IMG/VR virus record: IMGVR_UViG_3300042868_009074
Location: 203,767 to 267,766 of that record
Reading direction: 5' to 3' (one strand)
DNA length: 64,000 nt
Shown: piece after piece, positions 16,545-40,910 of the stretch
Layout: the number at the start of each line of letters is the position of its first letter
Position numbering within the stretch: position 1 is the stretch's first letter
Translations under genes and position numbers: made by a program
Notes under the pieces: generated by a model
What the model was told of the DNA's origin: nothing
What the model saw: only the letters and a program-made list of their open reading frames with translations
Databases searched by the model: none

Positions 16545-16570
16545 TCAATACCACCTACGGAAACTATTCT

Positions 16571-18151
16571 ATGAACAATAAATTAACTAAATACATAACA
16601 GCATTAGTTATGTTAACTACGTTTACACTTACTAATGCTATTCCAGCCCAAGCTGCCCAAAACAAGGGCGGTTCAGAAATAACTAAACCCAATTCTAAAC
16701 CTAAGAAAAAGACTAACAAAAGAGTTAAGTCTCATTCTTATAAGAAAGTTGTAAAGACTAAGTCTAAAGTTGCTACTGCTAACTCTAAAGTTAAATTTAA
16801 ACTTTCTTTGTCCACAGCTATTCCTAAGATAGGTGCAGACTATTCTTATGATTCTGGTTATACTGGGCAAGGATCTTACGTTGTTGTCATTGATACCGGC
16901 GTAGAAAAAGCACATCCTTTCTTAGCCGATAAGATAGCTCTAGAAGCCTGCTTTGCTACTCGTTGCCCTAATGGTACCAATCAGATGATTGGACCAGGAG
17001 CAGCTGTCCCAGTGCATTATCACGGGACACACGTTGCTGGTATCATTGCTGGTAGCAACTCACAGTTTCATGGAATTGCCCCAGGTGCAAAGATCATAGC
17101 TATCAACATTTTTGACGTATATGGTGCAGCCTATGATGATGATATGGTTAAAGCTTTAAACTATGTCTACTCTTTAGCTGATACTTACAACATTACTTCA
17201 GTTAATATGTCACTTGGTGGTAACACTGTTTTTAGATCTACTTGCGATTCTTATCTTCCTGATGTTACTCAAGCTATTAACAATTTAAAGTCAAAGAATA
17301 TTGCTACAGTTATTGCTTCTGGAAACAATTATTCTGCTGGTATGTCAGCTCCTGCTTGTATCTCTACCGCCGTTAGCGTAGCTGCTACTTATACTTCTAC
17401 AGATAAAGTAACTACATTTTCTAACGTATCTCAGTTTACTACACTGTCGGCTCCTGGCTATGCCATTAACTCTTCTAAGTTGATGGGATCTTATGGTTCA
17501 GCTTCTGGTACCTCAATGGCAACTCCATTTGTTGCCGGAGCTTTAGCCGTGTACCGTTCCAAGTTTGGTGTCCAATCTGTAGATAAAGTTATTACTGACT
17601 TTCAATCTACTTCTTCGCCTGCTGTTGATGATTTCACTGGAATTATAACTAAGCGAATTAATATGAAGTCCTTGATTGATTCCACTACTACACCGGTTGT
17701 TCCTCCAGTAGTAACTACTACTACTATTCCAAATGCAACAACTACAACGTTACCTACTACAACAACTACTACTACTGTTCCGGTGACCACTACTACTGTC
17801 CCAGTAACTACAACCCTTCCTCCCGTTACTGGATATGCAGTAGGAAAACCATTGCTTGTTTCGTTAGACTCTATGTCGTCTGTCTATAACTCTTACCTCC
17901 ATGATGTATTCACGATTACATATCTTGATGTTTATTATGGCAAAGATGTTTTAACTCATTATCTATTGACTTGCGACAGTGGTCAAACGTTTACTATTCC
18001 AGTAGATTATACTGGCCGTTTAAACTATTATAGATTAAAGAATACAGATGGAACCTACGCTAAAGCTACAGGTATCATTAGGTGTTACCTGCAAGGTGCA
18101 GTAGGATCCTTTCTTGCTCCAAAATCTTGGTGGGAAGACGTCAATAGATGA
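16571..18151 (+). CDS. secreted subtilisin-like serine protease (S8) with Thr-rich linker
   Basis: Signal peptide; catalytic triad VIDTG, HGTHVAG, GTSMATP. Confidence 0.92.
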   Translation: MNNKLTKYITALVMLTTFTLTNAIPAQAAQNKGGSEITKPNSKPKKKTNKRVKSHSYKKVVKTKSKVATANSKVKFKLSLSTAIPKIGADYSYDSGYTGQGSYVVVIDTGVEKAHPFLADKIALEACFATRCPNGTNQMIGPGAAVPVHYHGTHVAGIIAGSNSQFHGIAPGAKIIAINIFDVYGAAYDDDMVKALNYVYSLADTYNITSVNMSLGGNTVFRSTCDSYLPDVTQAINNLKSKNIATVIASGNNYSAGMSAPACISTAVSVAATYTSTDKVTTFSNVSQFTTLSAPGYAINSSKLMGSYGSASGTSMATPFVAGALAVYRSKFGVQSVDKVITDFQSTSSPAVDDFTGIITKRINMKSLIDSTTTPVVPPVVTTTTIPNATTTTLPTTTTTTTVPVTTTTVPVTTTLPPVTGYAVGKPLLVSLDSMSSVYNSYLHDVFTITYLDVYYGKDVLTHYLLTCDSGQTFTIPVDYTGRLNYYRLKNTDGTYAKATGIIRCYLQGAVGSFLAPKSWWEDVNR

Positions 18152-19570: not shown

Positions 19571-20803
19571 ATGTCTATTCTAGTATCTGAACTAGATCTT
19601 CCTTATGTACCACCTAAACTTATTAAATCTGATTTAACAACTTATGATCAATTTAAAATTGGTTTAGAAGCTCATAAGCAAAACTGGATTGGCACAACAA
19701 AACTTTCTTATGTGATTTTAGACCACAAGCATTCTGCTGCTATGTTGAAAGACAAGAGATGGCACAATGGTTTGTATTTATTAAGCGAACTTAATCCTCA
19801 TTTTACTGAAGAGATTAAGATGAGTAGGAAAAAATTAATAATTAACTTAGAAGGCGAAGATCATTCAAGACTCAGAAAGATAATTGCTCCAGTTTTTTCA
19901 CCAAAGACAGCTGAGCTTCTTCGACCAGACATGCAAGATGCTATCAATCAAGTTCTTAATGATGTCATCGAAAGCGGTCAATGCGATTTGCAAAAAGATG
20001 TATTCAACAAGTATCCATCATACATTATCTCTAAGATAGTAGGAGTCCCCAATTCAGATTGGGAGAAGTTTAGTCAATGGGCTGATGATACCTTCAAAAC
20101 ATTTGGTGGAAACTTTGAACACCATAGCGAAGTTATATTAAATACTCAAAATGAATTAGATCAATATACTAATAATTTAATCATCAGCAAAAAAGAAAAC
20201 AAAGGCAATGACCTTGTTTCTATGTTAATTGACGCAGAATTTGATGGTCAAAAATTATCAGATCAAGAAATACAATCTCTTATCCAAGTAGTTCTGATGG
20301 CAGGCATGGATACGACTAGAGCACAGCTTGGTCTTATAGCAGTTATGCTATCTGAGAGACCAGATTTAATATCGATGTTAGCCAATGATTTAAATGTTGA
20401 AGATATAATAGAAGAGTCTACTCGCTTAGATTCTGTTTTTAAATATGTAATGAGAATTGCTTCAGAAGACATTGAATACAATGGAGTCTTATTCCCTAAG
20501 GGAACAATTATCTCCCCAGCATTGGGTGTTAATAATTACGATGACTTAGCTTTTGAAAACGCATCTGAATTTATTCTTGATCGTAAAGCAACAAAGGGCA
20601 TTACCCTGTCTTATGGTGGTGGAATTCATTACTGTCTCGGTGCTTCTTTAGCACGAGCTCAAATGCAGGAATGTATGAAAGTTGTTGCAAAAAGAATGCC
20701 AGATTATAAAATTACTGGAGAAGTTCTTTATAAAGAAGCTTACGAATCAGTAGTCGGTCCAAGATCTATCCCTGTGACTTTTACACCTAACATTAAGATT
20801 TGA
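19571..20803 (+). CDS. cytochrome P450
   Basis: H.RLRK, AGMDTT (I-helix), ESTR (ExxR), YGGGIHYCLG heme ligand. Confidence 0.95.
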   Translation: MSILVSELDLPYVPPKLIKSDLTTYDQFKIGLEAHKQNWIGTTKLSYVILDHKHSAAMLKDKRWHNGLYLLSELNPHFTEEIKMSRKKLIINLEGEDHSRLRKIIAPVFSPKTAELLRPDMQDAINQVLNDVIESGQCDLQKDVFNKYPSYIISKIVGVPNSDWEKFSQWADDTFKTFGGNFEHHSEVILNTQNELDQYTNNLIISKKENKGNDLVSMLIDAEFDGQKLSDQEIQSLIQVVLMAGMDTTRAQLGLIAVMLSERPDLISMLANDLNVEDIIEESTRLDSVFKYVMRIASEDIEYNGVLFPKGTIISPALGVNNYDDLAFENASEFILDRKATKGITLSYGGGIHYCLGASLARAQMQECMKVVAKRMPDYKITGEVLYKEAYESVVGPRSIPVTFTPNIKI

Positions 20804-24832: not shown

Positions 24833-25117
24833 ATGGAATCCGAACAATTAGATGATATAATTAATTCAGTCATCAATGAACATGATGTTATACTGAATAA
24901 TTATAACGATATCTATTCTTTATTCAAAGAAATTATTTGGATGCCCAAACAAGTTCTCATAAATCTTTCTTCTGTTGTTGAGTATATGCAAAGTAAAGAT
25001 TCCAAATCAACATTGGATGCGCTACAAGAAACTAGTGCAATCCTTGAATCATTAAACAAAAAAATCAATCAATCAATTGAGTTAATCAAATCTGGAGAAG
25101 TTGTTGAAAAAAACTAG
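24833..25117 (+). CDS. hypothetical protein
   Basis: 94-aa ORF. Confidence 0.65.
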   Translation: MESEQLDDIINSVINEHDVILNNYNDIYSLFKEIIWMPKQVLINLSSVVEYMQSKDSKSTLDALQETSAILESLNKKINQSIELIKSGEVVEKN

Positions 25118-25508
25118 TAGAAAACCAAAAGGCTCTAAAAAGCTAGATGACTTTAATATTATTTCTGCTAATGAAAATGGTTGGAGACACAAAGCTTCTT
25201 GCTCTTCTAAGGAAGTCAATAGCAATTGGTTCTTTGCTCAACCTAAATCCCCTGAAGCCAATAGAGCTTTAAGCGTTTGCAAAAACTGTCCTGTTAAAGC
25301 TAATTGTCTTTACGATGCAATCATGTATCAATACCATGGTATATGGGGTGGCTATACTCAAGAAGCCCGTAATAAGATAATTGTTCATTACCTCAATAAT
25401 GATTTGACTTCTTTTACCCTTGAGCAAGCAAAACAAATCTATGATCATGTAGAACAATCTGGACAGCGTAAACCTGTCAATACAACTAACGTCCATATAA
25501 AACGTTAG
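25101..25508 (+). CDS. whiB: WhiB-family Fe-S transcription factor
   Basis: WRHKASC...WFF...C..CPV...CL.DA....HGIWGG. Confidence 0.9.
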   Translation: MLKKTSRKPKGSKKLDDFNIISANENGWRHKASCSSKEVNSNWFFAQPKSPEANRALSVCKNCPVKANCLYDAIMYQYHGIWGGYTQEARNKIIVHYLNNDLTSFTLEQAKQIYDHVEQSGQRKPVNTTNVHIKR

Positions 25509-26616: not shown

Positions 26617-27060
26617 ATGTTTATAGGAAAAAAGTTTAAATCTTTTACAGTTAGCTTTTGTACTATTGGTGCTCTCGCTGCAATCAACTATACATTGATC
26701 CATAACCCTTTAGTGTTTGTCTTTACTATGATGTTACTGGTTCATGAACTAGGTCATTATCTTATTGCTAAACTAGCTAAAGCAGATGCATCTTATCCTT
26801 TCTTTATACCTCTTCCTTTTATAGGTATAGGTATAACCAGAGTTAAAAATCTCTTACCCAAGCACAGAGCTTCCGTTGCTATTGCCGGAGTTCTGTTTTC
26901 TGCATTGTTTATTTTAAACGTTATTTTTAATAACTTTATATATCATATGTTTACTTTTTCTTCTTTATTTGTTCTTTTGTTTCTGGAATTGTTCTTTAAC
27001 TATTTCGGATCAGACGGTAATAAATACCGTCAATCAAAACTTTCTTTGCTATCTTCCTAA
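26617..27060 (+). CDS. membrane zinc peptidase-like protein (M50/site-2 protease-like)
   Basis: VHELGH within a hydrophobic helix, PFFIP, IAG. Confidence 0.65.
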   Translation: MFIGKKFKSFTVSFCTIGALAAINYTLIHNPLVFVFTMMLLVHELGHYLIAKLAKADASYPFFIPLPFIGIGITRVKNLLPKHRASVAIAGVLFSALFILNVIFNNFIYHMFTFSSLFVLLFLELFFNYFGSDGNKYRQSKLSLLSS

Positions 27061-27084: not shown

Positions 27085-27327
27085 TTGAACAGGAAAACCA
27101 TGAATCAAAGCAACAAGGCCAAAGCTAATATGTTAGAAAACAAAATCAATAATTTCTTTGAAGAATCTTATTTTGATGTTCAAGGAATGACTACTAAGAT
27201 TTCTTTTAATGAGACTCAACTTGTTCGTCTTATGACTAAGATTAGTGTTGGTCTTGTGACTGTTTGGTGGTCATCGTTAGAACTCAAAACTCTGCTAAAA
27301 ACTTATCAATTATCTAAGGGGCTTTAA
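27085..27327 (+). CDS. hypothetical protein
   Basis: ORF track; likely start at the ATG near 27100. Confidence 0.55.
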   Translation: MNRKTMNQSNKAKANMLENKINNFFEESYFDVQGMTTKISFNETQLVRLMTKISVGLVTVWWSSLELKTLLKTYQLSKGL

Positions 27328-27719
27328 TGTCTGAATATCCTGAACAAATTCCAAAGGAACAAAAGCCTTTGGATAAGTTTACCTTTTCTCTTAATCTTTC
27401 CAACAAAGTTAAAGAAGATCTAGAGTCTGAACTTTCTACAATAGAAGAGAGAATAAATTCTATTGTTAATAAGGTTACTGTTGACGGGATGCCTATACTA
27501 AAAGCTATTCTTCAAACCAGCCACGATAAAAAAGAACTTAAGCGTTTAGCTAAAGGTCTAGATAGAGTTGCTGATTTGATTGAAGGATCTGATCATATTA
27601 AAACTCGGTTAAATATAATTGATACCGCACATAAAGATCCTGATTGGTTCGCTTGGACCTTTGGTGATTTCTCTGAAGAAATCGACAAGCACATTGAATC
27701 TATTCTAGACGAAAGCTGA
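27327..27719 (+). CDS. hypothetical protein
   Basis: 130-aa ORF, translationally coupled. Confidence 0.7.
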   Translation: MSEYPEQIPKEQKPLDKFTFSLNLSNKVKEDLESELSTIEERINSIVNKVTVDGMPILKAILQTSHDKKELKRLAKGLDRVADLIEGSDHIKTRLNIIDTAHKDPDWFAWTFGDFSEEIDKHIESILDES

Positions 27720-27721
27720 TT

Positions 27722-29644
27722 ATGTCTAAAAATATAACCTATTCTATTGAGCAAACAGAGTCAACTATTGTAGCTCGCTCTACTGTAAAATCTTTTAACT
27801 TAGATCATGTGACAGATAAAGATATTACTTCTTATTATCGTCAGATTTCTAACCAGGCTTTATTTGACACCGGTCTTTTGCCCCTTAATGGAACTGGAAT
27901 TCTTTCTATCCGTTCTGCAGGACGGCATACTCAGATAGCTTTCCAGCATGCTCCAGCATTGGCTTACATTAACTGGGGTGCTAACGAAGGAGACCGAAAC
28001 GCTAAAGCCTATTTGCTTGCTCAGCCTTATCGTATTTGGGTAGCAGATCTTTTAGACGGCAATCTATACGGTGCTAGAATGTTCTATAGCCCTTATCCAA
28101 TCAGCCATCCTGATCAGCCTCTTTATCATATCAACCTTCCTAACACTAACTGCAAGGGTTATCGTGGTAATGGTGTAGGTTGGCAATGCTTGTATCACAA
28201 TGAAGACTGGACTAACATTTCTTTTAACGATAAAGTTAATAAGTTGATTCAACGTTGTTCAGGCATTGAAGCATACAACGATGCTAACATGTCAGAGACT
28301 GATGGTCCTAGGTTTTATCGTGAAAACAATAAACCAGAATACCTTTGGAACCCATCTGCTTGGCAAGAAAAATCTCAAGAAGAAGGATTAGACTGGACTC
28401 TTGATGAAGATATGTGGATTCCTATTCTTGTTAAAGATATGGATAACCAAGACAAGCACTACGATGATGGTCAACCATTAACATTTGCAATGGCTTTGTT
28501 AGGTAACTATAATTCTTACTACAATGATAACTATCACCCTAAGCTTATCAACGCTTTTGCTCGTACTGATATTGATATTCCTACAGACCAAGTATTTAAT
28601 GTCTTTGTACAAGCTCACAACTCTGCTAAAACTGAACCTCAAAAGCTAGATCAGTTTAATGCTGCTGCTTTAAGCAAGGTAAAGATTGCAGAAACTTTTG
28701 TACAACCTTCGCTATTCAATTCACCAGACGATGATAATGATAACACGTTTACTTGCCCAGGATGTGAAGAATCTTATTCTGAAGATAATGAAGAGTTCTT
28801 TGCTGATCCTAAAGGATCTAACTGGTGTCAAAGTTGCTTCCAAGAAAATTGGGTTTATTGTGAAAACGTAGATACTTATCTTCATGCAGAAGATGATGAT
28901 GCTGTTTACATGGAAGCTTATTCTTATTATGTAGATGCCAAGAAAGCAACTATAAAAGAATGTAACCATTGCGACATGTCTTATTGGATCACTAAAGATT
29001 CTACTGAATCATTTCCGTTCTATCAGTTTCAATCGCAAAAAGAAGACGTTGATTTAGTTGATTGTTGTCCATCATGTTTTAACGAACAAGCAGCTGAACA
29101 TCTTCCTGATCTTCTTCCTTCTGGATTAAACCCTTACAGTAAAAAGCCTGTTTACACTAAGAACCATGCTGTATGTTCTGGTTGTAATGTTGGTATATTT
29201 GTGGATGTTCCTGAGCTTGCTCACACTTATGTAAGCGTTCCTTCTTTGTTTCATCATAACGCTAACTTTTGGGAAGACATTGAAATTGATATTTCTACGT
29301 TTACTTTAGCCAGTCAAAAGTTTTGTTTACAATGTGCAAAGAAACAACACTATTGTCCTTCTGGACATTGGACTGACAAGAGTAATATTTCGATAATGCC
29401 TTTTGTCTCTACTCCTTTTGTTAATTCTAAAGGCGATGAAATAATTCTTAAAATAAAAGAAGTTTGTCAAGGATGTTTAAACTCTAAATATGATTTAGAT
29501 GATCCTGTTAAATCTTTGTTTACTCATACTCATTATTATTACAGAGCTTTGAGTTCAGTTTACTACGACCTTCATCCACAATATTCTACTACATTTGAAT
29601 TGTTCAATACTGACGGTTCAGATTACAGTCCAGAACCTTTTTAA
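27722..29644 (+). CDS. prokaryotic E2-like protein (family D/PRTRC-B-like) with Cys-rich C-terminus
   Basis: AQPYRIWV...RMFY......DQPLYHINLPN...GWQCLY; many CxxC pairs downstream; adjacent to JAB/E1/Ubl. Confidence 0.6.
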   Translation: MSKNITYSIEQTESTIVARSTVKSFNLDHVTDKDITSYYRQISNQALFDTGLLPLNGTGILSIRSAGRHTQIAFQHAPALAYINWGANEGDRNAKAYLLAQPYRIWVADLLDGNLYGARMFYSPYPISHPDQPLYHINLPNTNCKGYRGNGVGWQCLYHNEDWTNISFNDKVNKLIQRCSGIEAYNDANMSETDGPRFYRENNKPEYLWNPSAWQEKSQEEGLDWTLDEDMWIPILVKDMDNQDKHYDDGQPLTFAMALLGNYNSYYNDNYHPKLINAFARTDIDIPTDQVFNVFVQAHNSAKTEPQKLDQFNAAALSKVKIAETFVQPSLFNSPDDDNDNTFTCPGCEESYSEDNEEFFADPKGSNWCQSCFQENWVYCENVDTYLHAEDDDAVYMEAYSYYVDAKKATIKECNHCDMSYWITKDSTESFPFYQFQSQKEDVDLVDCCPSCFNEQAAEHLPDLLPSGLNPYSKKPVYTKNHAVCSGCNVGIFVDVPELAHTYVSVPSLFHHNANFWEDIEIDISTFTLASQKFCLQCAKKQHYCPSGHWTDKSNISIMPFVSTPFVNSKGDEIILKIKEVCQGCLNSKYDLDDPVKSLFTHTHYYYRALSSVYYDLHPQYSTTFELFNTDGSDYSPEPF

Positions 29645-29684
29645 AATTTAAAACTACAACTACAAATATACTATTGGAGAAATT

Positions 29685-31385
29685 ATGTCTAATAAAATTA
29701 AAGAACCAGTTACTCTAGATGATCTAGACTACTTCTGGATGACTAACGGAGCACCATGTTTTATGGCTGACCGTGAAGACATCTGTGAAGTAGTTGAGTC
29801 TCTAGGTTTTCAGATCTATTACTTAATCGCTGATCTTGCAATTAATAAAGAAGTTAAAGGCAAAGATAAACAATTTAAAGAAATTACGTGGATTGAGACT
29901 ACTCATAAAGCCCGAGTTCTTAAAGTTGTTAATAACATTATTGGTCGTTCTGTTTCAGAAACAGATGATGAATTTGGACAAGACATTCTTTCTTCAGTAG
30001 AAGAATCTGCAACATACAACATGCCAAAGATTCCTAAAGTTATTGTTAAAAAGTTAGACGAGTTCTTTAGATTAGTGCACGCTCAGCACGGCACCGAGTC
30101 TATAGTCATCTTAACTTTTGATCCTAATGTAAACACATCTGATGGTTGGGGTGTCTTGGTTCCTGAACAGACTAATACTCCAGCACACTGCAAGTATGAC
30201 GCTGAGTCCATTGTTGATCTTAAACCTGACCATGTAATCATTGTTGGCTCAGTCCACAGTCATCCTGAGATGGCAGCATACGCCTCTGGGACCGATCATG
30301 AGGACCAAGCAGACTTCGATGGGGTCCACATCACCTACGGCTGGATGAAGACCAAGAACGGTGGAGCTACTGAGTATCATGCAGAGATGCAAATGAACGG
30401 TACTGCTTATCTTTTGAATATTGAAGATGTCTTTGAAGACACTACTGAAATTAAAGATCCAGATCCTCAAGTTGTTGAATGGTCCGGCAAAGTAAAAAAA
30501 GTATCCCCCCCGCCGTACAAAGCGGGGGTTACACCACAGGCTACCCAAGCCCTGCCAACTGGTCAGGCTCAGGGTCTAGTGTCGGGACATACGGGCACTA
30601 CTGGGATTAACTATTACGGTGGACGTTCTGTTCCATCTCGTAAGCAAACAATCCCTTTTCAAATGGATGAATACGATGGTCAACTCGTTGCCGAGATTGA
30701 CACTTCTTCAAATGTTTCAATGACCTGTCCTTCTTGTGAACTATATCTATTTAAAGCAGACGTTGAAGGACATGGCTTTTGTCCAGCTTGTGACATCCCA
30801 TTAGCTCCTAAAAATGCTTCTCTTAAATCTATTGAATTTGCAGTTAATTATCATCTTGTCAATCGTTCTAAAGAAACAGGATGTGCCTATTACCTTTGGT
30901 GTAAAGACGATAAGAATGAAAACTTTCTTATTCAAATTAAACCAGATGAATTAGATAGTCGTGACATTTCAATCGGTTCTAGAATAGATGAATTCGAAGA
31001 GTATGGTGATGCTGATCAAGCTGGCTTATCTCTTCTTAAAGAATCAGATGGCTTGTTCTTTTATGCAGAAGACGTAACATTATGTTGTGCGTGTCCTGCT
31101 GACAGAGCATGGACTGAATGCAAGTGTGCACCTACGGTTTACTGGGAAGACATTGAAAGATTTGAAATAGCAGCAAACAATACAGAAAAATATGTTGCTG
31201 ATTCAATTTGTCAAACATGTGCTTTCTATTGTCTTCCTGAATGTGATTCTTATAGAAACAACATTATTGAATTTATTTCTACACAACAGTTGCCATCCAA
31301 AGCAATAGATGGCTGTGATTCTTGGGTTGATTTTTCCAAGGTTGCTAACGATATAGATAGCGGTATTTATGACACATACAGATAA
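29685..31385 (+). CDS. JAB/MPN+ metalloprotease (deubiquitinase-like) with Cys-rich extension
   Basis: HGTES...VGSVHSHP...AYASGTD = E...HxH...S..D JAMM motif. Confidence 0.85.
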   Translation: MSNKIKEPVTLDDLDYFWMTNGAPCFMADREDICEVVESLGFQIYYLIADLAINKEVKGKDKQFKEITWIETTHKARVLKVVNNIIGRSVSETDDEFGQDILSSVEESATYNMPKIPKVIVKKLDEFFRLVHAQHGTESIVILTFDPNVNTSDGWGVLVPEQTNTPAHCKYDAESIVDLKPDHVIIVGSVHSHPEMAAYASGTDHEDQADFDGVHITYGWMKTKNGGATEYHAEMQMNGTAYLLNIEDVFEDTTEIKDPDPQVVEWSGKVKKVSPPPYKAGVTPQATQALPTGQAQGLVSGHTGTTGINYYGGRSVPSRKQTIPFQMDEYDGQLVAEIDTSSNVSMTCPSCELYLFKADVEGHGFCPACDIPLAPKNASLKSIEFAVNYHLVNRSKETGCAYYLWCKDDKNENFLIQIKPDELDSRDISIGSRIDEFEEYGDADQAGLSLLKESDGLFFYAEDVTLCCACPADRAWTECKCAPTVYWEDIERFEIAANNTEKYVADSICQTCAFYCLPECDSYRNNIIEFISTQQLPSKAIDGCDSWVDFSKVANDIDSGIYDTYR

Positions 31386-32133
31386 TTCTCCTAGAAGAGT
31401 AGTTCTTGTTGGTGCCGGTGGCATTGGCACTTGGCTTGCTGAAGGCGTAGCTCGAATGCTAGAGTGGAAATTTCCTGGCTCTGCATTGATTCTTGTTGAC
31501 GGTGATAACTATGAACAAAAGAATTTAGAACGTCAGAACTTTAAACAGATGGGCAACAAGGCTTCAGTTAAAGCTTTGGAACTTACTCCTTCATTTCCAA
31601 ACACAATGTTTATTCCAGTCCCTAAATGGGTTGTTGATGATAACTTTGCTGGAGTAACAGATGAAGAATCTCCAAAGATTAAAGCTTCTGAGCTAATCAC
31701 TGAAGGAGATATTGTTCTTGCAGTAGTAGATAACTTTGCTGCACGCAAAATCTTGTTCGATGCGGCATCTAAACTTGATAATGTTGACGTCTTTACTGGT
31801 GGCAATGATGATGACCTTTTTGGTTCTATCTATCATTATCAACGCAGAGATGCTAAAGATGTTACTGAGCATCCAGTAACCTTTCATCCAGAGTATGAGA
31901 GTCCACCAGATAAAAACCCCGGTGAGATGTCTTGTCAAGAACGAGCAGAAGTAAATGGTGGAACCCAGTTACTTGCAACTAACATGGCAGTTGCAGCTTT
32001 TATTCTTGGTCGTATTCACAAAACAATTGTGAACAACCAAAACCCCGAAGAGTCTGAGATTTACTTTGATCTCGGCGTCGGTAAATCAGAACCATATAAC
32101 CGTATGGTTCAATTAGTACCACTACCAGTATAA
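31369..32133 (+). CDS. ThiF/E1-like activating enzyme
   Basis: VGAGGIG, DGD.YE.KNL.RQ, VDN..AR, GGN, candidate catalytic Cys in MSCQE. Confidence 0.9.
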   Translation: MTHTDNSPRRVVLVGAGGIGTWLAEGVARMLEWKFPGSALILVDGDNYEQKNLERQNFKQMGNKASVKALELTPSFPNTMFIPVPKWVVDDNFAGVTDEESPKIKASELITEGDIVLAVVDNFAARKILFDAASKLDNVDVFTGGNDDDLFGSIYHYQRRDAKDVTEHPVTFHPEYESPPDKNPGEMSCQERAEVNGGTQLLATNMAVAAFILGRIHKTIVNNQNPEESEIYFDLGVGKSEPYNRMVQLVPLPV

Positions 32134-32150
32134 TAGGAGAATCTATTACT

Positions 32151-32402
32151 ATGAATAATCAATCATCATCAGCTTCGGCTGCGTCTTCTTCTGGCGTAGC
32201 TAACGTCAGATTTGGCGTTTACAGTCAGCCAACACCAGTTGCTGGCAAAAGCGTTAAAGAAGTTCGCGAGCAATTCAGCAAGTTGTGGGGAATCCCCAAC
32301 GACGCAATTGCTTACAAGGGCAAGGATAAGCTTGACGAAGACTATGTCGTTCAGCCAAGTGACAACCTTGAGTTCCATCGCCGTGCCGGCGAAAAGGGCT
32401 AA
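32151..32402 (+). CDS. ubiquitin-like (beta-grasp) protein
   Basis: 83 aa, beta-grasp-like pattern, C-terminus LEFHRRAGEKG, directly after E1. Confidence 0.75.
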   Translation: MNNQSSSASAASSSGVANVRFGVYSQPTPVAGKSVKEVREQFSKLWGIPNDAIAYKGKDKLDEDYVVQPSDNLEFHRRAGEKG

Positions 32403-32518
32403 CTAACCCTTGCAAAGATCGTGGGGGAGGATGTACTAAACTTCTTACTTGATGTAGTACAGCTTCCCCCACTCTTACATTTTTTACAAAGGCCCCCACT
32501 TATTTTAAAGGTATCCTA

Positions 32519-34141
32519 ATGCTATTCTCCCAAATTAAACTTGGAGTTCCTTCTATTTGGCTTAAGACTACTGATTATGCTAGAACCACAGAGTCTCTTA
32601 TCAAGTTTAATCAACGCTCTTTCTACACTATAGATCCCCTTAAAGGTTATGCTAAGTTCATAGACAATGAATGGAAGAGCATACTAGTCCAAATGCCTGA
32701 TCCTCAAAACCCAGAGGAACTTCGTGAGACTACAACTTTTGATTTTACTGTAGCTTACACTCATCTTCTTGACCAGTTAAACACTAACAAAGAATCTGCT
32801 ACATTTTTATATTCTGTTTACACTAAACCAGAAGCAATGATGGAAATGTTTTCTGGATTGATCTCCATGAACAACACTCAATATCGTTCTGCTTTTTGGT
32901 CTGATGATCTTGAACAAATGCCTCTTCAGTTGGTGTTTATGTCTTGGTTTGATTGTCCAGAAGATTTTAAAAACATGTTTTATCTTTCTGATTTTGAAGA
33001 ACCAAACCTTGAAGAACTCGCAACTATTATTAATCACATAGATGATTCTTCTGGTAACACTCTTGTTGATCAGGGATCTCTTCCTGCAATTGCTAAAGCC
33101 GCAATTGGTTTGACAGAATCTGATTTCATTAATGTTTGTCTTAATTCTGTTCTTGAAAATGGAAAGATTGATCCAGATTATATTTATAATTTTAAGATGG
33201 CCGACATTAAAAAGAATGGCATTCTTGAAATCATTCGTCCTAAGACTACCTTTGATAATATTGGTGGTCTTGATAACATTAAAGAACTTATTACTCGCAA
33301 CGCTGTTCTTTGGCATAATCCAGAAAAAGCTGCTGAGTTTGGGATTAGTCCTATCCGTCGTATTCTTATGGTTGGCGTTCCCGGTACTGGTAAATCAGCT
33401 ATTTGTGAAGCAACTGCTAATGCACTAGGGCTTGATCTTGCTCGTACTGGTGTTAGCCAAGTTATGAATTCTTACATTGGTCAATCAGAGCAAAACATGC
33501 GTACTGTCTTTAAACAGATTAGTGTTATGGCTCCGTTGTGCGTTTGGATTGATGAGTTTGGTCGAGACATGTCTGGTGGTCAAAGCTCTGGACAAGTCGA
33601 CGGCGGTACTACTGACCGTGTTCATGGTGAGTTCCTTACTGGTTTACAAGAGCTTCCTGATAACGTCTTCTTGATGTGTGCTGCCAATCAGCTTGATCAT
33701 CTTAAACCAGAAATGCTACGAGCTGATCGTTTTGACAAGATCATGTTTGTTGGTCTTCCTTCTTTTAATGAGCGTATGTCCATCCTTGATATTTATCTTC
33801 AAGGAATTAAAACAGATCACGTTTTTGATCTTGAAGAGCTAGCTCATGCTACTCAATACTTTACTGGTGCAGAGATGAAGTCTTTGATTAAAGAAGTTAA
33901 GTTTAACGTTTCTTCTGCCGAACTTCGTCCAATCAATACCCGTGATATTCTGGCTTATGCTCCGAAGCAGAGAAATATTCTTTGGAATAAGAGTCGTCAA
34001 ATGATTCAAGATCTCTACGTCACTGCTATAGAGCAATGGGACTGGGCCTCGACAGATCAATTTAATGATGCTAAACTAATAGTTAGCGGTGAATCTAAAA
34101 CAACAAATGCACCTGCAAAAGCCAGTGGCTTTAAATGGTAA
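32519..34141 (+). CDS. AAA+ ATPase (Ycf46/Cdc48-like)
   Basis: GVPGTGKS, VWIDE, AAN...L.PE.LR..RFD. Confidence 0.92.
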   Translation: MLFSQIKLGVPSIWLKTTDYARTTESLIKFNQRSFYTIDPLKGYAKFIDNEWKSILVQMPDPQNPEELRETTTFDFTVAYTHLLDQLNTNKESATFLYSVYTKPEAMMEMFSGLISMNNTQYRSAFWSDDLEQMPLQLVFMSWFDCPEDFKNMFYLSDFEEPNLEELATIINHIDDSSGNTLVDQGSLPAIAKAAIGLTESDFINVCLNSVLENGKIDPDYIYNFKMADIKKNGILEIIRPKTTFDNIGGLDNIKELITRNAVLWHNPEKAAEFGISPIRRILMVGVPGTGKSAICEATANALGLDLARTGVSQVMNSYIGQSEQNMRTVFKQISVMAPLCVWIDEFGRDMSGGQSSGQVDGGTTDRVHGEFLTGLQELPDNVFLMCAANQLDHLKPEMLRADRFDKIMFVGLPSFNERMSILDIYLQGIKTDHVFDLEELAHATQYFTGAEMKSLIKEVKFNVSSAELRPINTRDILAYAPKQRNILWNKSRQMIQDLYVTAIEQWDWASTDQFNDAKLIVSGESKTTNAPAKASGFKW

Positions 34142-34161: not shown

Positions 34162-34788
34162 ATGTCTGAAGAATTTTCTTATCACGATGATTCATACAAC
34201 CCTGAAGCTGCAATTGATGCATCTACTGGTGAAGTTCAAAAAACTTATGATAAAGATCTATACAAGAAATGGTTTCGTTCTAAAACTCAGAGTGGATTTC
34301 TTTCAATCCGTCCTTGGTTTCAGGGTCTAAAGCTTCGTATTGATATTGGTAAGACTTCTTCAGACGGCAAGCTTATGAGCAGCACTAATGTGTTTGTTGA
34401 TGTAGTAGACTTTGGTGCCTATCTCAAGGCTATTACTACAGGCACTGCAGCTCTTGGCTATCCAGCCAATGAAAGAACTGGTGTACCTAGTGCTGAAGGA
34501 TTTGTTTCTTATGGTGGTGCTAAAATAAATGGCAAACCAGTAAGTAGAATATTTAAATCTCATTATTGGCAAAATGGAGATGTCTTTGATTCTAACAACT
34601 TTGTATTTAAGACTGGTCACTTTGAAGCTCGTATGGCTGAGTCCGGAGCTTTCATTCCAGATATGAAGAATATTATTTCTTTTGATTCAATTAAAGTAAC
34701 TCGTCAAGATATCCACTCTATTTCTTATATGGTTGATCTGGCTATGGCTTCTCATGTAGCTAATAAATCAGATTGGTATGAGGTCTGA
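34162..34788 (+). CDS. hypothetical protein
   Basis: AAGGA RBS, 208 aa. Confidence 0.8.
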   Translation: MSEEFSYHDDSYNPEAAIDASTGEVQKTYDKDLYKKWFRSKTQSGFLSIRPWFQGLKLRIDIGKTSSDGKLMSSTNVFVDVVDFGAYLKAITTGTAALGYPANERTGVPSAEGFVSYGGAKINGKPVSRIFKSHYWQNGDVFDSNNFVFKTGHFEARMAESGAFIPDMKNIISFDSIKVTRQDIHSISYMVDLAMASHVANKSDWYEV

Positions 34789-35188
34789 TATGGAAAATAT
34801 AGAAGAAGAATTTCTTGAACTTCCTCCTTTGACTGAGATAGAAGAACTTAAAAGACTTCTTAACGAATTAGTTATAGGACTTGCTGCTAAGTTTGATGAG
34901 AAAATAAATCAGATTGAAAAGACCATGGAAGATTATGAGAAGCAGTCTGCTACTCTTATAGTTGGTTTTGGTGAACAAGCAGTATTCCTTGAGGCCTTAA
35001 TGGGTCAACTCCAGTTTGCTACATCTGAAGCACAAAAAGATTTTCACGATACTCTTAACAACAGTAGAAAACAAATGTTGAACATTATGAAAGATGGTGC
35101 TCGTGATCTCGTGGCCGATGAAAATGAAGGACTTGCCTCAGCCATTGAAGACGTGGTTGACTCAAAGTCAACTGACACCCCCAATTAA
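34778..35188 (+). CDS. hypothetical coiled-coil protein
   Basis: Heptad-rich ORF. Confidence 0.7.
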   Translation: MRSDMENIEEEFLELPPLTEIEELKRLLNELVIGLAAKFDEKINQIEKTMEDYEKQSATLIVGFGEQAVFLEALMGQLQFATSEAQKDFHDTLNNSRKQMLNIMKDGARDLVADENEGLASAIEDVVDSKSTDTPN

Positions 35189-36903: not shown

Positions 36904-38044
36904 TATCTATAAACAATATGATGATAACCTTTATTATCTATCTTTGATTTCTGATCGTTTTCAAAGACAAAATTCTGAATACTACAGATTCTCATCTCAT
37001 CTTGGAATTATTTCTTTAGATCAAGTTCAAGAAAATATTAATTCGTTTCCAAAGAACCGGTTAATAGATTCTCTTAGCGGTCCTTATCCAATAGCTGTTC
37101 GTTATATGGATAAAGGAGTATTCCTTGTTGAAAGGCCTCCTTTCCAAATGAAGATTGACTACTCACCTACTAAGAGCAATCGTGTTCGCCGTCCAATTAA
37201 ACCAGTTACAGTCTGGGTCCCCTGGACTGTTTCTGTTTATAATTTATCTGCAGATGTAAACACAATGATCAACTCTTACAAGATATATTTTAACGACTCT
37301 TCTATATCTTCATTAGAAGATCGTTTAGTTACTAACTATTTTTGTAATGTTTATGGTGATGGCAAAATTTGTTTAGGCCGTTCTGCTCAAGGTATCCAAG
37401 ATAAATTACAAAATAATCAGATTACAGACTTTGCTACTTTACATTCTTATATGTTTAATGAATACTTTTCTGGTGGATGGAATACTGACTTAGGTTCTAA
37501 TTTGTATTCTTTAATGAGAAGTATAGATTCTTCTTACATGATCAAAGATTACATTAATCTTTCTGATTCCTCAATCGATGCAAGAGCTAAAAAATTAAAG
37601 TTGAAGTTCTTTAAATCTCATCATCCTGCTTATGAGATAGCTAACTCTTTTTATAATCTTTCTCTTTTATCTCTTGAAGAAACTTTGAACATGGTTACTG
37701 AAGTAAAACAAAAGCATTTTCATCAAGTTAAACCAATTAGTTCTATTGCAGCTACTGACGTAGATAGTTCTGTAGATCATTATGTTGATCCAATAAATTT
37801 TACAGATAATTATTCTAACAATTATTGTGTTGTAAAACTTGTTTTAGATAACAGTCTTAACGCTACTAATCTTAATAGCCGTGATATCCCTTCTGAAATA
37901 TTGCAGTTCTTTAAAGAAAACTCCTACGATATTATGGATCAAGTTTACGAAAGCTATAATTCTAGAAACTCAATGTCTATTGAATTAAATTATCAAATTC
38001 CTCTTATTTCTCCTTCTACAATTGAGGAGCAGGTGAATGTATAA
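36890..38044 (+). CDS. second prokaryotic E2-like protein
   Basis: VERPP...VPWTV...KIYF...NYFCNVYGDGKICLG. Confidence 0.6.
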   Translation: MSTFNIYKQYDDNLYYLSLISDRFQRQNSEYYRFSSHLGIISLDQVQENINSFPKNRLIDSLSGPYPIAVRYMDKGVFLVERPPFQMKIDYSPTKSNRVRRPIKPVTVWVPWTVSVYNLSADVNTMINSYKIYFNDSSISSLEDRLVTNYFCNVYGDGKICLGRSAQGIQDKLQNNQITDFATLHSYMFNEYFSGGWNTDLGSNLYSLMRSIDSSYMIKDYINLSDSSIDARAKKLKLKFFKSHHPAYEIANSFYNLSLLSLEETLNMVTEVKQKHFHQVKPISSIAATDVDSSVDHYVDPINFTDNYSNNYCVVKLVLDNSLNATNLNSRDIPSEILQFFKENSYDIMDQVYESYNSRNSMSIELNYQIPLISPSTIEEQVNV

Positions 38045-39107
38045 CTTAACAAACTTTAAAAGTACTTCTTCAAATTACGAAACAACCAATGCAGGAATTG
38101 TTCATTCTCTTACCGCATTTGATTCCTCTGGCATAAGCCATGTTATAGAAGACCAAAACGAATTTGAATTTACCTACTACAATGAGTGGATGAAAGATAA
38201 TATCTTTATTTCTCTTTATCGAGATTCAAAAGATACTTACAATTACAATTCTAATTCCATTATTCCACCAGGTCTTATCCATATTGATAAAAACTTTTTA
38301 GTTTTTGAGAAGCCTCCTACTCATAAGCTAATTAATATTTATAACCAGTATCTTCATGACATAAATGATGATACAAGATTATACTCTTACTACCTACCTA
38401 TTCCTTGGCAAGTTTATATTGTAGAATTTGATCCTAATAATAATAGGACTTGTTTAGTTAAAATGTTCTTTTCCAAATCAAGCTTAGTTAATTTTGATCA
38501 ACAGCTTTTTCTTCCTCCTATCCCTAACTTTTATGTTAACGGATTATTGTGTCGCCCGTTCTTTAATTCCATGGATGATATAGAAAGATATTCTGCTGAT
38601 GTTCCTGGAATCATGGAATCAGCTTACGATTGGGTTTGGGCTAGTAACTTTAACTTAGATCTTTCAGAAACTATTTCTTCTGTTTATGTTCAAAAGAATC
38701 CTATTCAGTTATCTCGTGGCATAACTGACAGTTCTCACCTTAGTTATAAGCTTGGCATGAGTGTCATAAACCAGCTTTACACACATTGGGAATCATTACC
38801 GTTATCTGAAGTTACTTCTTTTAATTGGCCAAATCCAGCTTTTGCAATGACTTTTCAAGAAGATCTTGCTACTGTAGATGTCCATGATTTATTTGATCAA
38901 TGGTGTGAGAATAACAGTATATCCATAGATTCAGACGAAGAGCATGATGAATACTACCAATCTGATAGTTTCAGATCATCTCTTCCTAATCCTAAAACTA
39001 TCTCTAAGACATTTAAGGATATTATGAATTATTGCATTAGCCATACTTCTTTCCCTGTTTCTAAGAAAAAACTCAAAAATATTCTTGTTTCTCGAGCATC
39101 AGAATAA
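38037..39107 (+). CDS. third prokaryotic E2-like protein
   Basis: FEKPP...LPIPWQVYIV...KMFF...LFLPPIPNFYVNGLLCRP. Confidence 0.6.
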   Translation: MYNLTNFKSTSSNYETTNAGIVHSLTAFDSSGISHVIEDQNEFEFTYYNEWMKDNIFISLYRDSKDTYNYNSNSIIPPGLIHIDKNFLVFEKPPTHKLINIYNQYLHDINDDTRLYSYYLPIPWQVYIVEFDPNNNRTCLVKMFFSKSSLVNFDQQLFLPPIPNFYVNGLLCRPFFNSMDDIERYSADVPGIMESAYDWVWASNFNLDLSETISSVYVQKNPIQLSRGITDSSHLSYKLGMSVINQLYTHWESLPLSEVTSFNWPNPAFAMTFQEDLATVDVHDLFDQWCENNSISIDSDEEHDEYYQSDSFRSSLPNPKTISKTFKDIMNYCISHTSFPVSKKKLKNILVSRASE

Positions 39108-39729: not shown

Positions 39730-40173
39730 ATGTTAGACGCAAAGAATGTAGTAACCATCTCAGGTGGTATAGTTTCAGAGCCAGAAATAATCAATGATAA
39801 AATAGCTAAGTTTAGAGTAGCTATTGATTACGCTGGTTCAGAAAAAGGCGGAGATAATAACTCAGGTTATTTCGACGTAGTATACTATCTCAAAGAAGGT
39901 ACAAACTTCGCTTCAAAGAATGCACAGTTCTTGCATTCTCAAATCACAGGTGGAAAACTCAAGAAGGGTTCACCACTTCAAATCCTCGGACGCTTAGTGC
40001 AAGAGCGTTGGCAACAAGATGGAGCTAACCGCTCTAAGGTTGTTATCGTAGCTGAATCAGTGTCCTACGCTGCATCTAACTACTCAAAGACTAATGAGTC
40101 AGGTGAAGCACCAAAGACTGCAGAAGCCGGATCCCCAGCATCTTCTTACTCTTCAGTACCTAACCAGTTTTAA
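39730..40173 (+). CDS. ssb: single-stranded DNA-binding protein
   Basis: FRVA...YFDVV...KKGSP..ILGRL.QERW...G.NRSKV.IVAE; C-terminal Phe. Confidence 0.85.
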   Translation: MLDAKNVVTISGGIVSEPEIINDKIAKFRVAIDYAGSEKGGDNNSGYFDVVYYLKEGTNFASKNAQFLHSQITGGKLKKGSPLQILGRLVQERWQQDGANRSKVVIVAESVSYAASNYSKTNESGEAPKTAEAGSPASSYSSVPNQF

Positions 40174-40910
40174 TGGAGTCTGAGTTTAATCAGGATGATT
40201 TAGATTCTCTGATTAAAGAAGCTCTATCTGTTCCGGTAAACCCGCTGCATCCTAAATCTGGGATGCATGTGGGTTTTATGGAGACTGATATGTTGGAGCT
40301 GTTAAGCGGTCATCTTTCTAATAAGATTCCGCTTTCAGCTATATCAGAGATCTATCAAGATTTGCGATTAGATCTTTTATCTAGAAAATCTAATCATCAA
40401 ATAAAAGACTTGCATACAGTTATACTTAATTGTCGCAAATGTGAGATGCAACAAACTACTCCGGAACTTCCTAAGTGGAATGTAAAAAACCCAGATGTTT
40501 TATTCATTACTGATAATCCTTCTTTAGATTCTGATTCAGTTTCTTTCTTTCTTTCTGCTTTGAAAGAAGCCGGTTTTGAATCATCTAATGTTTGTTTAAC
40601 TTACGTTAACCGTTGCCCAGTCAAAAGAAAATATACCAATCAAGAAGTTTTTAATTGTTCTCCTTATCTTCATAATGAGATTCAACTATTAAACCCTAAA
40701 TTGATTGTAACGTTAGGTTCAGTGCCTCTAATCTCATTACTTGGATTAGATGTAAAACTTAAAGAGTATAGGGGTAATTTAACTTGGTTAGGATACTGGC
40801 CAATCATTCCCACATATTCACCAATATACGCTGTAAGAAATGGTCAGAATTTTCAAGACCAATTTTTATCAGACATTAAATCAGCACATAACTTTTCAAC
40901 CAAGGATTAA
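40173..40910 (+). CDS. uracil-DNA glycosylase family 4-like protein with divergent motifs
   Basis: CRKC, TYVNRCP, CSPYL..EI.LL.PKLIVTLG; motif A TDNPS, motif B TYSP. Confidence 0.75.
   Translation: MESEFNQDDLDSLIKEALSVPVNPLHPKSGMHVGFMETDMLELLSGHLSNKIPLSAISEIYQDLRLDLLSRKSNHQIKDLHTVILNCRKCEMQQTTPELPKWNVKNPDVLFITDNPSLDSDSVSFFLSALKEAGFESSNVCLTYVNRCPVKRKYTNQEVFNCSPYLHNEIQLLNPKLIVTLGSVPLISLLGLDVKLKEYRGNLTWLGYWPIIPTYSPIYAVRNGQNFQDQFLSDIKSAHNFSTKD

Follow-up and report, generated by a model that had tools for sequence, protein, structure and literature searches.

A clade of large freshwater phages carries a predicted ubiquitin-like protein tagging cassette probably related to the PRTRC system

A clade of large freshwater phages carries its own genes for an E1, an E2-like protein, a JAMM peptidase and a ubiquitin-like protein (Ubl) as a conserved core operon, so that here the virus, and not the bacterium, owns a predicted ubiquitin-type tagging machine of unknown targets and biological role, whose conjugation chemistry is inferred. 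The cassette was found in a window of 64,000 nucleotides (positions 203,767 to 267,766 of IMG/VR record IMGVR_UViG_3300042868_009074), where a preliminary description had recognized five contiguous genes, E2-like, JAB, ThiF/E1, Ubl and AAA+. What it observed is confirmed, since all five open reading frames lie exactly where it placed them, on the plus strand, and their motifs are present and conserved in relatives. Its interpretation is only partly supported, and the claim that the five genes form a complete tagging cycle is not supported as stated. Four of the proteins are what it had said, it was right that the carrier is a phage, and the PRTRC cassette, which it named among others, is indeed the closest known system, but the membership of the AAA+ gene is unproven, and a conserved upstream gene, a second E2-like paralogue and a proteasome-like peptidase had been missed. 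The elements considered here are the following.

27327-27719 (+), p130, a helical-looking protein of 130 aa of unknown function, a conserved fifth core gene ending 2 nt before the E2-like gene starts.
27722-29644 (+), E2L, 640 aa, with an N-terminal (~1-290) divergent Prok-E2_D/UBC-like domain followed by a variable array of CxxC zinc-ribbon-like repeats and a conserved C-terminal ...PF.
29685-31385 (+), JAB, a JAMM/MPN+ metallopeptidase of 566 aa (domain ~105-260) with a C-terminal Cys-rich extension, a predicted Ubl-processing and/or deconjugating enzyme.
31369-32133 (+), a minimal ThiF/MoeB-type E1 adenylating enzyme of 254 aa, overlapping the JAB gene by 17 nt.
32151-32402 (+), Ubl, 83 aa, with a disordered N-tail (~1-13), a predicted beta-grasp core (17-76) and a flexible tail ending in Gly83.
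32421-32485 (+), a GC-rich stem-loop (32421-32472) followed 7 nt later by a T-run, a terminator-like or attenuator element closing the Ubl operon.
32519-34141 (+), a classic-clade AAA+ ATPase (unfoldase type) of 540 aa with a ~230-aa N-domain of unknown function, a linked neighbour.
34162-35188 (+), d208 and d136, two unknown proteins that always travel with the AAA+ gene; d208 has a conserved C-terminal ...DWY[ED]x.
38037-39107 (+), d356, a second E2_D-like paralogue, 4 kb downstream of the AAA+ gene.
47676-48293 (+), a proteasome/HslV/BPH-like Ntn peptidase of 205 aa with Thr2 as nucleophile.

The order p130-E2L-JAB-ThiF-Ubl is kept in about 50 independent viral contigs, far beyond chance, and the synteny also holds in three very divergent loci. 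The p130 gene is found directly upstream of the E2-like gene in all related loci, including the most divergent ones, named L063-L065 (HMM E 1e-21 to 1e-32; hhalign 97.5-99.6%). ThiF and Ubl are among the best-conserved genes of the region. In the JAB protein the catalytic motif E138...H191-S-H193-x7-S201-x2-D204 is complete, and these five residues are invariant in 44 sequences. Pfam Prok-JAB matches it with E 1e-5 (25.7 bits against a cut-off of 25), a weak PDB hit to AMSH-LP aligns the catalytic motifs, and hhalign to gp215 of Bacillus jumbo phage vB_BceM_WH1 gives 95.8%. The E1 matches Pfam ThiF with E 3.6e-13 (49.6 bits against a cut-off of 28.1), is 70-90% identical across the clade, and its profile matches E1-like proteins in the PDB, including UBA5, Uba4, ATG7 and SAE2. 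G15/G17/G18/G20 of the GAGGIG motif, D46, N52, R55, Q56, K64, D121 and C189 are invariant, thus comprising the Rossmann GxGxxG, the Arg of the NLxRQ motif, a Lys and the Mg-binding Asp expected in adenylating enzymes of this class. Cys189, in MSCQE, is the single invariant Cys and lies about 68 residues after D121; the PDB alignments cover only the N-terminal half of the protein, so that its equivalence to the catalytic Cys of the crossover loop in thioester-forming E1-like enzymes is inferred.

The Ubl gave no Pfam hit, and hhalign to PRTRC-C, the family of Pfam Prok_Ub (PF14454), gave P 0.007 with a probability of 5%. However, its AF2 model (pLDDT 80) shows the order beta-beta-alpha-beta-beta-beta, and a Foldseek search against the PDB returned ubiquitin variants, SUMO1 and NEDD8 (probability 1.00, TM 0.6-0.7, E from 2e-4). 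The protein ends in EFHRRAGEKG, and EFHRxxGEKG is invariant in the alignment, in which 33 of 37 sequences end at Gly and 4 carry two further residues (SL, LA, NI). Outside that alignment, the divergent locus L063 ends in QKG and L065 in EKG followed by three residues, SLR. The preliminary description had left open whether the Ubl is used with its KG end or is trimmed to RRAG; the extra residues that relatives carry after the Gly settle the question in favour of KG as the mature end. An alternative, considered unlikely, is that the Ubl is a ThiS/MoaD-like sulfur carrier, adenylated by the E1 and converted to a thiocarboxylate for thiolation of a tRNA, of DNA or of a small molecule, with JAB only maturing the carrier and the 640-aa protein not being an E2. 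The minimal ThiF/MoeB-type E1, whose profile also hits Uba4, MoeB and ThiF, the ThiS-like '...GD.vEF' ending before a Gly tail, the six tRNAs of the phage, including tRNA-Lys(UUU), and the existence of JAB plus E1 plus Ubl sulfur-transfer operons (PMC1779556) are in favour of it. Against it, no rhodanese, cysteine desulfurase or PP-loop sulfurtransferase was found among the ORFs scanned with Pfam, two E2_D-like proteins with invariant Cys are tightly linked, the tail ends in KG and not in the usual GG, and Foldseek ranks ubiquitin, SUMO and NEDD8 first.

The assignment of the 640-aa protein as an E2, including the choice of the Cys in GWQCLY as the catalytic one, holds up only through transitive profile homology. 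Direct searches with Pfam, PADLOC, PHROGs and NCBIfam gave no hit, the model (pLDDT 81.6) has no fold match in the PDB by Foldseek (best E 0.22), and the direct profile comparison with PRTRC-B is not significant (hhalign P 0.03). The intermediate is the family of WH1 gp214: hhalign of this family against the E2L N-domain gives 95.5% (E 1.4e-8) and against PRTRC-B gives 83.7% (E 8e-6), the E2L N-domain against the merged profile gives 94.7%, and gp214 homologues pass the cut-off of Pfam Prok-E2_D (PF14460), the E2 of the plasmid PRTRC cassette. In addition, a structural hit in BFVD matches a 241-aa viral protein at E 1e-9. The E2L family comprises at least 441 metagenome homologues and 215 clusters at 50% identity, and the N-domain is 54-87% identical where the whole protein is 40-63%. 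N141 and C156 are invariant, C156 in the G-x-h-C context of the family, and it aligns with the Cys of PRTRC-B and gp214. The order of secondary-structure elements in the model (helix 35-44, six strands within 59-123, a loop, then helix 168-178) is compatible with a UBC fold, although Cys144, Cys156, Cys179 and His136 are all invariant and could instead form a metal site. The paralogue d356 is present in nearly all related loci and has the invariant motif P-N164-F-x-x-N-G-x-L-C172-R-P; hhalign against the E2L N-domain gives 97.7% (E 1.8e-12), or 75.5% (E 2.4e-5) with a shallower alignment, and the HMM hit in the window has E 1.2e-8.

The hairpin pointed out in the preliminary description is real and conserved. 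Its free energy is -33 kcal/mol (z = -3.4), no shuffled sequence folded as well, and it is unique in the window. A perfect GC-rich stem of at least 8 bp follows the Ubl stop in 34 of 39 unique relatives, against 0-1 of about 40 after seven other genes; the stem sequence changes in divergent loci, and a T-run follows in about half. The AAA+ gene therefore looks like a separate unit. Its product conserves Walker A (GVPGTGKS), Walker B (WIDEFG), the Y-I-G pore loop and the Arg fingers of the second region of homology (RADRFD) in 40 sequences, and matches Pfam AAA (E 3.4e-24, 86 bits), phrog_8638 (E 9e-72) and PADLOC IetA (E 7.5e-25), while the NCBIfam CDC48/PAN/FtsH models (E 1e-29 to 1e-34) all remain below their equivalog and subfamily cut-offs. 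AAA-d208-d136 stay contiguous in all loci, including those with 2.2 kb of other genes inserted after the Ubl gene (loci L054-L060); d208 and d136 have no family hits and no homology to the genes after the AAA+ in other phages. The peptidase scores 31.7 bits with Pfam Proteasome against a cut-off of 22.4, its best PDB hit is BPH 5ovs (E 1.6e-4), then HslV, and all 44 unique homologues start with MTT[IV][IV]; a functional relationship with the cassette is possible but only circumstantial.

A stronger reading would be a phage-encoded ubiquitin-proteasome-like system, in which the AAA+ unfolds tagged proteins, the peptidase degrades them and JAB recycles the tag. In its favour, the AAA+ has the pore loop and second region of homology, its best hits are Cdc48 and PAN, it lies downstream of the Ubl gene in every locus of the clade where sequence is available, including L063, and it sits between two E2-like genes. 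Moreover, the proteasome homologue, with an intact Thr nucleophile, lies on at least 8 cassette-bearing contigs (the window's two, five more, and the one with locus L152), 3-9 kb beyond d356 where the position was read. This reading is nonetheless unlikely. The terminator-like hairpin and, in L054-L060, the insertion separate the Ubl and AAA+ genes; no AAA+ lies within 7 kb of ThiF in WH1, Vibrio phage D69, faecal phage MT835919 or PRTRC; and the AAA+ family occurs alone in many phages, being found without E1/E2/JAB in phages JP1, L338C and SM1. The proteasome homologue occurs on many ~97-kb viral contigs with no E2L hit and never within 3 kb of an AAA+, and no HbYX-type docking motif was found. 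All loci linking these genes belong to one phage lineage, so the synteny is not independent evidence.

The explanation preferred, with moderate confidence, is a phage-borne, strongly diverged relative of the PRTRC or '6d' type prokaryotic ubiquitin-like system, forming a core operon in a clade of roughly 170-220 kb phages from metagenomes, probably actinophages. The analysis itself establishes the identities of the components (that of the E2 only transitively), their catalytic residues, the conserved synteny and the terminal Gly, whereas the chemistry is deduced from them. In this view, the E1 would adenylate Gly83 of the Ubl, possibly forming a thioester on Cys189, the Ubl would pass to Cys156 of the E2L N-domain, or perhaps to Cys172 of d356, and would then be transferred to lysines of unknown phage or host targets. 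The fast-evolving zinc-ribbon C-terminal halves of the E2-like and JAB proteins would be the likely target- or partner-binding parts, and the JAMM peptidase would trim precursors extending past the Gly, as seen in relatives, and/or remove the tag. The hairpin would end or attenuate the transcript, the AAA+ module being a separately controlled neighbour and not a demonstrated fifth component. To our knowledge, no PRTRC-type system has been shown biochemically to conjugate anything.

The PRTRC cassette (NCBIfam TIGR03735-03742; Pfam Prok-E2_D, Prok_Ub, DUF2016+Prok-JAB and alpha-hel2) matches the 'type 6d' operon described by Iyer, Burroughs and Aravind in 2006 (PMC1779556). It shares with the phage cassette separate genes for an E2_D-type E2, a JAB peptidase, a small ThiF-type E1 and a small beta-grasp Ubl with a C-terminal Gly, the same E2-JAB-E1 order, and location on a mobile element. 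PRTRC_ThiF and PRTRC_A are the best NCBIfam hits of the E1 and JAB proteins, but with 30 bits against 144.75 and 20.2 against 101.8, and Ubl, JAB and ThiF all score far below the equivalog cut-offs. Furthermore, in the phage the E2 domain is recognisable only through an intermediate family, E2 and JAB carry long zinc-ribbon extensions, the Ubl gene follows the E1 gene instead of preceding the E2 gene, p130 and a second E2 paralogue are added, and the carrier is a lytic-type large phage, not a plasmid or integrative conjugative element. No ParB, PRTRC-E or alpha-helical PRTRC-F was found among the neighbours scanned with Pfam, and p130, d208 and d136 show no similarity to PRTRC proteins E or F. 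The same E2_D-JAB-ThiF order occurs in the gp214-gp215-gp216 trio of WH1, and similar trios in the same order are found in D69, MT835919 and B. cereus plasmid pBFI_1. In WH1, gp214 is a bare 241-aa domain, no Ubl homologue was found nearby, the neighbours are NADAR and SPFH genes with no AAA+, and only ThiF is named in the record, the other two being annotated as hypothetical.

The antiphage systems Bil (BilABCD) and type II CBASS Cap2/Cap3 share the logic of E1, E2 and JAB (plus Ubl), with a C-terminal Gly activated by adenylation, but are host-encoded defences. The single 254-aa ThiF domain of the phage E1 does not fit the Bil architecture described in PMC11601596. CBASS fuses E1 and E2 next to a CD-NTase and tags a cyclase, whereas here E1 and E2L are separate genes, no cyclase hit was found among the ORFs scanned, and the only PADLOC hits are weak ones (E 1.8e-5 or worse) to the E1 part of the E1-E2 models. 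The roles proposed in the preliminary description (tagging host proteins, reversing host defences, aiding assembly) all remain speculative. A counter-defence or host-takeover tool would have the same chemistry but would serve to mimic, saturate or reverse host Ubl-type immunity (Cap2/Cap3, Bil, Bub) or to tag a host factor, and would not act on phage proteins. Bacterial E1/E2/JAB systems do act in antiphage defence (PMC10097602, PMC11601596), the C-terminal halves of E2L and JAB evolve fast, as expected for an arms-race interface, and the genes lie among early-type genes such as WhiB and a helicase. This purpose is nevertheless improbable on present evidence, since the enzymes have no specific similarity to Cap2/Cap3 or Bil, nothing in the analysis identifies a target, and the system is a conserved core block of the clade and not a variable accessory gene, which fits an intrinsic phage function at least as well. 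The previously known phage Ubl and JAB pair, the tail-assembly proteins I (Ubl) and K (JAB+NlpC) of Lambda/T1 (PMC1779556), likewise places a phage-encoded beta-grasp protein with a conserved Gly next to a JAB peptidase, but that module has no E1 and no E2, so it performs processing only, and it lies in the tail gene cluster.

The five ORFs of the preliminary description, read there as a phage-encoded ubiquitin-like conjugation operon, were found exactly at the positions assigned to them, all on the + strand and tightly packed, so the observation itself held. Pfam recognises Prok-JAB in the 566-aa protein (residues 124-219, E 1e-5), ThiF in the 254-aa protein (E 3.6e-13), and AAA plus its lid domain in the 540-aa protein (E 3.4e-24), whereas the 640-aa protein (E2L, for E2-like) and the 83-aa protein (Ubl) have no hit in Pfam, PHROGs, PADLOC or NCBIfam. 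The best NCBIfam hits of the JAB and ThiF proteins are PRTRC_A and PRTRC_ThiF, but both fall far below the curated cut-offs. The interpretation, that the five genes form a complete tagging cycle, was supported only in part, since membership of the ATPase is possible but not shown and the E2 assignment rests on indirect profile evidence. The features of the window on which this analysis centres are the following.

27722-29644, + strand: E2L, the 640-aa E2-like protein.
32421-32472: stem-loop after the Ubl gene.
34162-34788: d208, a protein encoded downstream of the AAA+ gene.
38037-39107, + strand: d356, a second E2_D-like paralogue of 356 aa, 4 kb downstream of the AAA+ gene.
47676-48293, + strand: a 205-aa proteasome/HslV/BPH-like Ntn peptidase starting MTTIIG.

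The DNA belongs to a phage. The window carries six scattered tRNA genes, its PHROG hits cover a helicase, a protease, a virion protein and tail fibres, and it is identical to two IMG/VR viral contigs. It also encodes WhiB, which the literature uses as a marker of actinophages (PMC10914622), and the nearest cultured relatives of its helicase are Tunturiibacter phages and actinophages. An actinobacterial host is therefore likely, although inferred. IMG/VR contig 3300042868_009074, of 267 kb, holds two different copies of the whole cassette (locus L010 at 221-242 kb and locus L043 at 6-27 kb) that are only about 57% identical in the E2L N-domain, and it is probably a chimeric join of two related phages and not one genome.

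E2L has more than 441 metagenomic homologues. A profile of its N-terminal 300 residues finds a closed family of 215 clusters at 50% identity, of which 184 score below 1e-30, and nothing beyond the family. Megablast of the region, and tblastn of E2L and JAB, against 50,697 phage records found nothing. In 53 IMG/VR loci and several long ENA/NCBI contigs (170-220 kb) the order is always p130-E2L-JAB-ThiF-Ubl-AAA-d208-d136, where p130 is a 130-aa protein and d136 follows d208. ThiF (70-90% identity) and the Ubl (58-93%) are among the best-conserved genes, while E2L (40-63% overall, 54-87% in the N-domain) and JAB (38-75%) have fast-evolving C-terminal halves rich in CxxC pairs. Three very divergent loci still have [p130 homologue]-E2L-JAB-(split JAB C-terminus)-ThiF-Ubl. 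In the most divergent relatives the Cys-rich C-terminal part of the JAB protein is a separate small ORF between the JAB and ThiF genes (11731-12144 in locus L063 and 7733-8254 in locus L065). Hence p130 is a fifth core gene, which the preliminary description did not list. Neither p130 nor d208 and d136 showed similarity to PRTRC proteins E or F, so they were rejected as their counterparts, and the proteins d206, d304, d384, p80 and up244 showed no similarity to any cassette protein.

Thirty-seven distinct Ubl homologues share an invariant ...EFHRxxGEKG end. Thirty-three of them stop at the Gly and four add two residues (SL, LA, NI), while two more divergent relatives end QKG and EKG-SLR. This is the classical signature of a modifier whose reactive end is that Gly and which sometimes needs trimming, and it answers in favour of KG the alternative left in the preliminary description, use of the protein as is or trimming to RRAG. 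The AlphaFold model (pLDDT 80) has a disordered N-tail, a beta-beta-alpha-beta-beta-beta core and a floppy tail, and Foldseek against PDB returns ubiquitin variants, SUMO1 and NEDD8 first, with probability 1.00 and TM 0.6-0.7. The absence of a beta-grasp, which had been set beforehand as grounds for rejecting the proposal, was therefore not observed in the predicted structure.

In the JAB protein E138, H191-x-H193, S201 and D204 are invariant and align with AMSH-LP. The E1 keeps the glycine-rich loop, the NLxRQ Arg, Lys64, Asp121 and one invariant Cys189, and its profile hits UBA5, Uba4, ATG7, SAE2, MccB and TcdA in the PDB. That Cys189 would be the thioester site is an inference. A sulfur-carrier role for these proteins was considered as a rival, but no sulfur-transfer enzyme was seen among the ORFs scanned, and the presence of two E2-like proteins argues against it.

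Assignment of E2L to the E2 enzymes is less direct. Its model is fairly confident (pLDDT 81.6) but has no PDB neighbour by Foldseek (best E 0.22), which leaves the UBC fold unproven and does not disprove it. Sequence searches of E2L, of its N-domain profile and of the d356 profile against PDB also found nothing. In BFVD the model matches a family member and, at E 1e-9, a 241-aa viral protein. The link came from tblastn of the ThiF protein, which found Bacillus jumbo phage vB_BceM_WH1, where gp214 (241 aa), gp215 (weak JAB) and gp216 (ThiF) lie in the same order. Five homologues of gp214 pass the Pfam gathering threshold for Prok-E2_D, the E2 family of PRTRC protein B. Profile-profile comparison gave 95.5%, E 1.4e-8 for the gp214 family against the E2L N-domain, 83.7%, E 8e-6 for the gp214 family against the PRTRC-B family, and 94.7% for the E2L N-domain against the merged profile. 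Direct hhalign of the E2L N-domain against one PRTRC-B sequence, or against a PRTRC-B family profile, was not significant, and only the gp214 family gave significant links. The direct E2L to PRTRC-B comparison (P 0.03) nevertheless aligns end to end and puts Cys156 (GWQCLY) on the conserved G-x-I-C of PRTRC-B, and N141 on its conserved Asn. Hence we infer that E2L is a highly diverged E2_D-type protein and that the cysteine chosen in the preliminary description is the right one, although a metal site formed by Cys144, Cys156, Cys179 and His136 is not excluded. The most conserved E2L segment (residues ~178-199) contains the lowest-confidence stretch of the N-domain model (residues 182-189, pLDDT below 50).

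The E2L N-domain HMM also hits d356 (E 1.2e-8), and hhalign gives 97.7%, E 1.8e-12, or 75.5% with a shallower alignment. The invariant motif of d356, P-N-F-x-x-N-G-x-L-C-R-P, has the canonical spacing of Asn to Cys. In one relative (locus L007) d356 ends ...EPF, like the 640-aa protein; a conserved ...[ED]PF stands at the very end of nearly all E2L proteins.

Comparable trios occur in cultured and uncultured phages outside this clade. The Prok-E2_D HMM finds the gene two positions upstream of ThiF in Vibrio phage D69, and genes in the loci of faecal phage MT835919 and of three plasmids, and the JAB HMM finds the gene in between in D69 and WH1. The trios lie at 4716-7810 in WH1 (locus L004, LC597490) and at 5173-7942 in D69 (locus L005), with MT835919 as locus L006, and apart from ThiF their genes are annotated as hypothetical in the records. 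In WH1, which is a cultured phage, a NADAR gene and an SPFH gene follow. No Ubl homologue was found near the WH1, D69 or MT835919 cassettes. On a PRTRC plasmid the order is ParB-E-C(Prok_Ub)-F-B(E2_D)-A(JAB)-ThiF, which matches the '6d' operon of Iyer et al. 2006 (PMC1779556). The phage cassette is inferred to work like, and to descend from the same stock as, PRTRC/6d, but it fails every PRTRC equivalog threshold and lacks ParB, E and F, so we do not file it as PRTRC. It is not Bil, because the E1 architecture is different, and not CBASS, because there is no E1-E2 fusion and no cyclase among the ORFs scanned. The only previously described phage Ubl-JAB pair of which we are aware, lambda tail-assembly I/K, lacks E1 and E2 (PMC1779556). 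Literature searches found no description of a phage-encoded E1/E2/JAB/Ubl set, although their coverage was incomplete and absence is not proof.

The stem-loop at 32421-32472 is strong (-33 kcal/mol, z -3.4) and unique in the window. A perfect GC-rich stem of at least 8 bp follows the Ubl stop in 34 of 39 distinct relatives, against 0-1 of about 40 after seven other genes; a metric that allowed bulges did not discriminate. The stem sequence is different in divergent loci, and a T-run follows in about half. The T-run/AAAGGC motif after the hairpin is not enriched in the window, so it is not a repeated promoter motif. The hairpin is therefore a conserved terminator-like or attenuator element, which fits the earlier proposal that Ubl mRNA exceeds ATPase mRNA and also marks an operon boundary.

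The AAA+ protein is a genuine classic-clade unfoldase-type ATPase, with Walker motifs, a YIG pore loop and Arg fingers. Its gene stays with d208 and d136 when 2.2 kb is inserted after the Ubl gene in loci L054-L060, and it is still one gene downstream of the Ubl gene in divergent L063. However, no AAA+ accompanies the homologous trios in WH1, D69, MT835919 or PRTRC, and the same AAA+ family (phrog_8638) stands alone in Agrobacterium, Rhizobium, Pseudomonas and mycobacterial phages. All the loci that link it to the cassette belong to one phage lineage, so its membership is possible but not shown. That AAA+ and d208 form an independent two-gene module shared with phages JP1, L338C and SM1 was rejected, because d208 is not homologous to the downstream genes of those phages. 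An HbYX-type docking motif was looked for on the AAA+ and none was found; the conserved C-termini found instead are the ...PF of E2L and a ...DWY[ED]x at the end of d208.

The 205-aa protein at 47676-48293 passes the Pfam Proteasome threshold, resembles BPH and HslV most and starts MTT..., as do all 44 distinct viral homologues, which keep the N-terminal Thr. It lies on at least eight contigs that also carry the cassette, namely the window's two, five more and L152, where it sits about 3 kb beyond d356. It is also on many ~97-kb viral contigs that gave no E2L hit, and it never lies within 3 kb of an AAA+ or E1. Phage-borne proteasome homologues are already described, and the survey that described them found no AAA+ partners and none of its AAH group in Actinobacteria-specific phages (PMC8665760). 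The co-presence of Ubl, E1, two E2-like proteins, JAMM, an unfoldase and a proteasome homologue is striking but circumstantial. It would be compatible with a self-contained ubiquitin-proteasome-like pathway, all within about 21 kb, in which one Ubl, one E1, two E2-like enzymes, a JAMM deconjugase, a Cdc48/PAN-like AAA+ unfoldase and a BPH/HslV-like peptidase would together select, unfold and destroy host or phage proteins during infection. We consider this extended degradation pathway unlikely, though not excluded. If true, it would be the first viral, and the first bacterial-world, system to join Ubl tagging to a proteasome homologue, and it would supply the missing AAA+ partner for the orphan proteasome homologues.

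What the sequences establish is the list of parts, their catalytic residues, the synteny and the Gly end of the Ubl, whereas adenylation of Gly83, transfer to the E2 Cys, conjugation to targets and JAB trimming or deconjugation are inferred, and a counter-defence role remains a rival as to purpose. Bacterial E1/E2/JAB/Ubl systems have recently been shown to be antiphage weapons (CBASS, Bil), and the plasmid-borne PRTRC type is not known to have been tested experimentally. Here a whole clade of large environmental phages keeps a complete set of such predicted enzymes as some of its best-conserved genes, which implies that the virus itself needs protein tagging. The locus offers an E2-like family so diverged that current libraries miss it, a natural series of Ubl precursors bearing on JAB processing, and a possible link to an unfoldase and a proteasome homologue for which no partners are known. 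If conjugation does occur, the identity of its targets would show whether phages use ubiquitin-like tags for assembly, for host takeover or for counter-defence.

Other genes of the window include unusual auxiliary functions and neighbours of the cassette. Upstream of the cassette lie the first three features listed.

25101-25508: WhiB (E 2e-14).
26617-27060: a small membrane protein with a weak M50-peptidase-like HExxH region, conserved in synteny.
16538-18151: an S8 subtilisin-like protease.
19571-20803, + strand: a cytochrome P450 (Pfam E 9e-25), an unusual auxiliary gene.
55354-55956, + strand: a 2OG-Fe(II) oxygenase (E 2e-13), likewise unusual.
56134-58518, - strand: a 794-aa protein made of 13 DUF5122 beta-propeller repeats with an AbrB-like segment, next to tail-fibre-like genes.
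40173-40910, + strand: a UDG-superfamily protein.
11787-12542, + strand: a weak IS110-type transposase-like hit.
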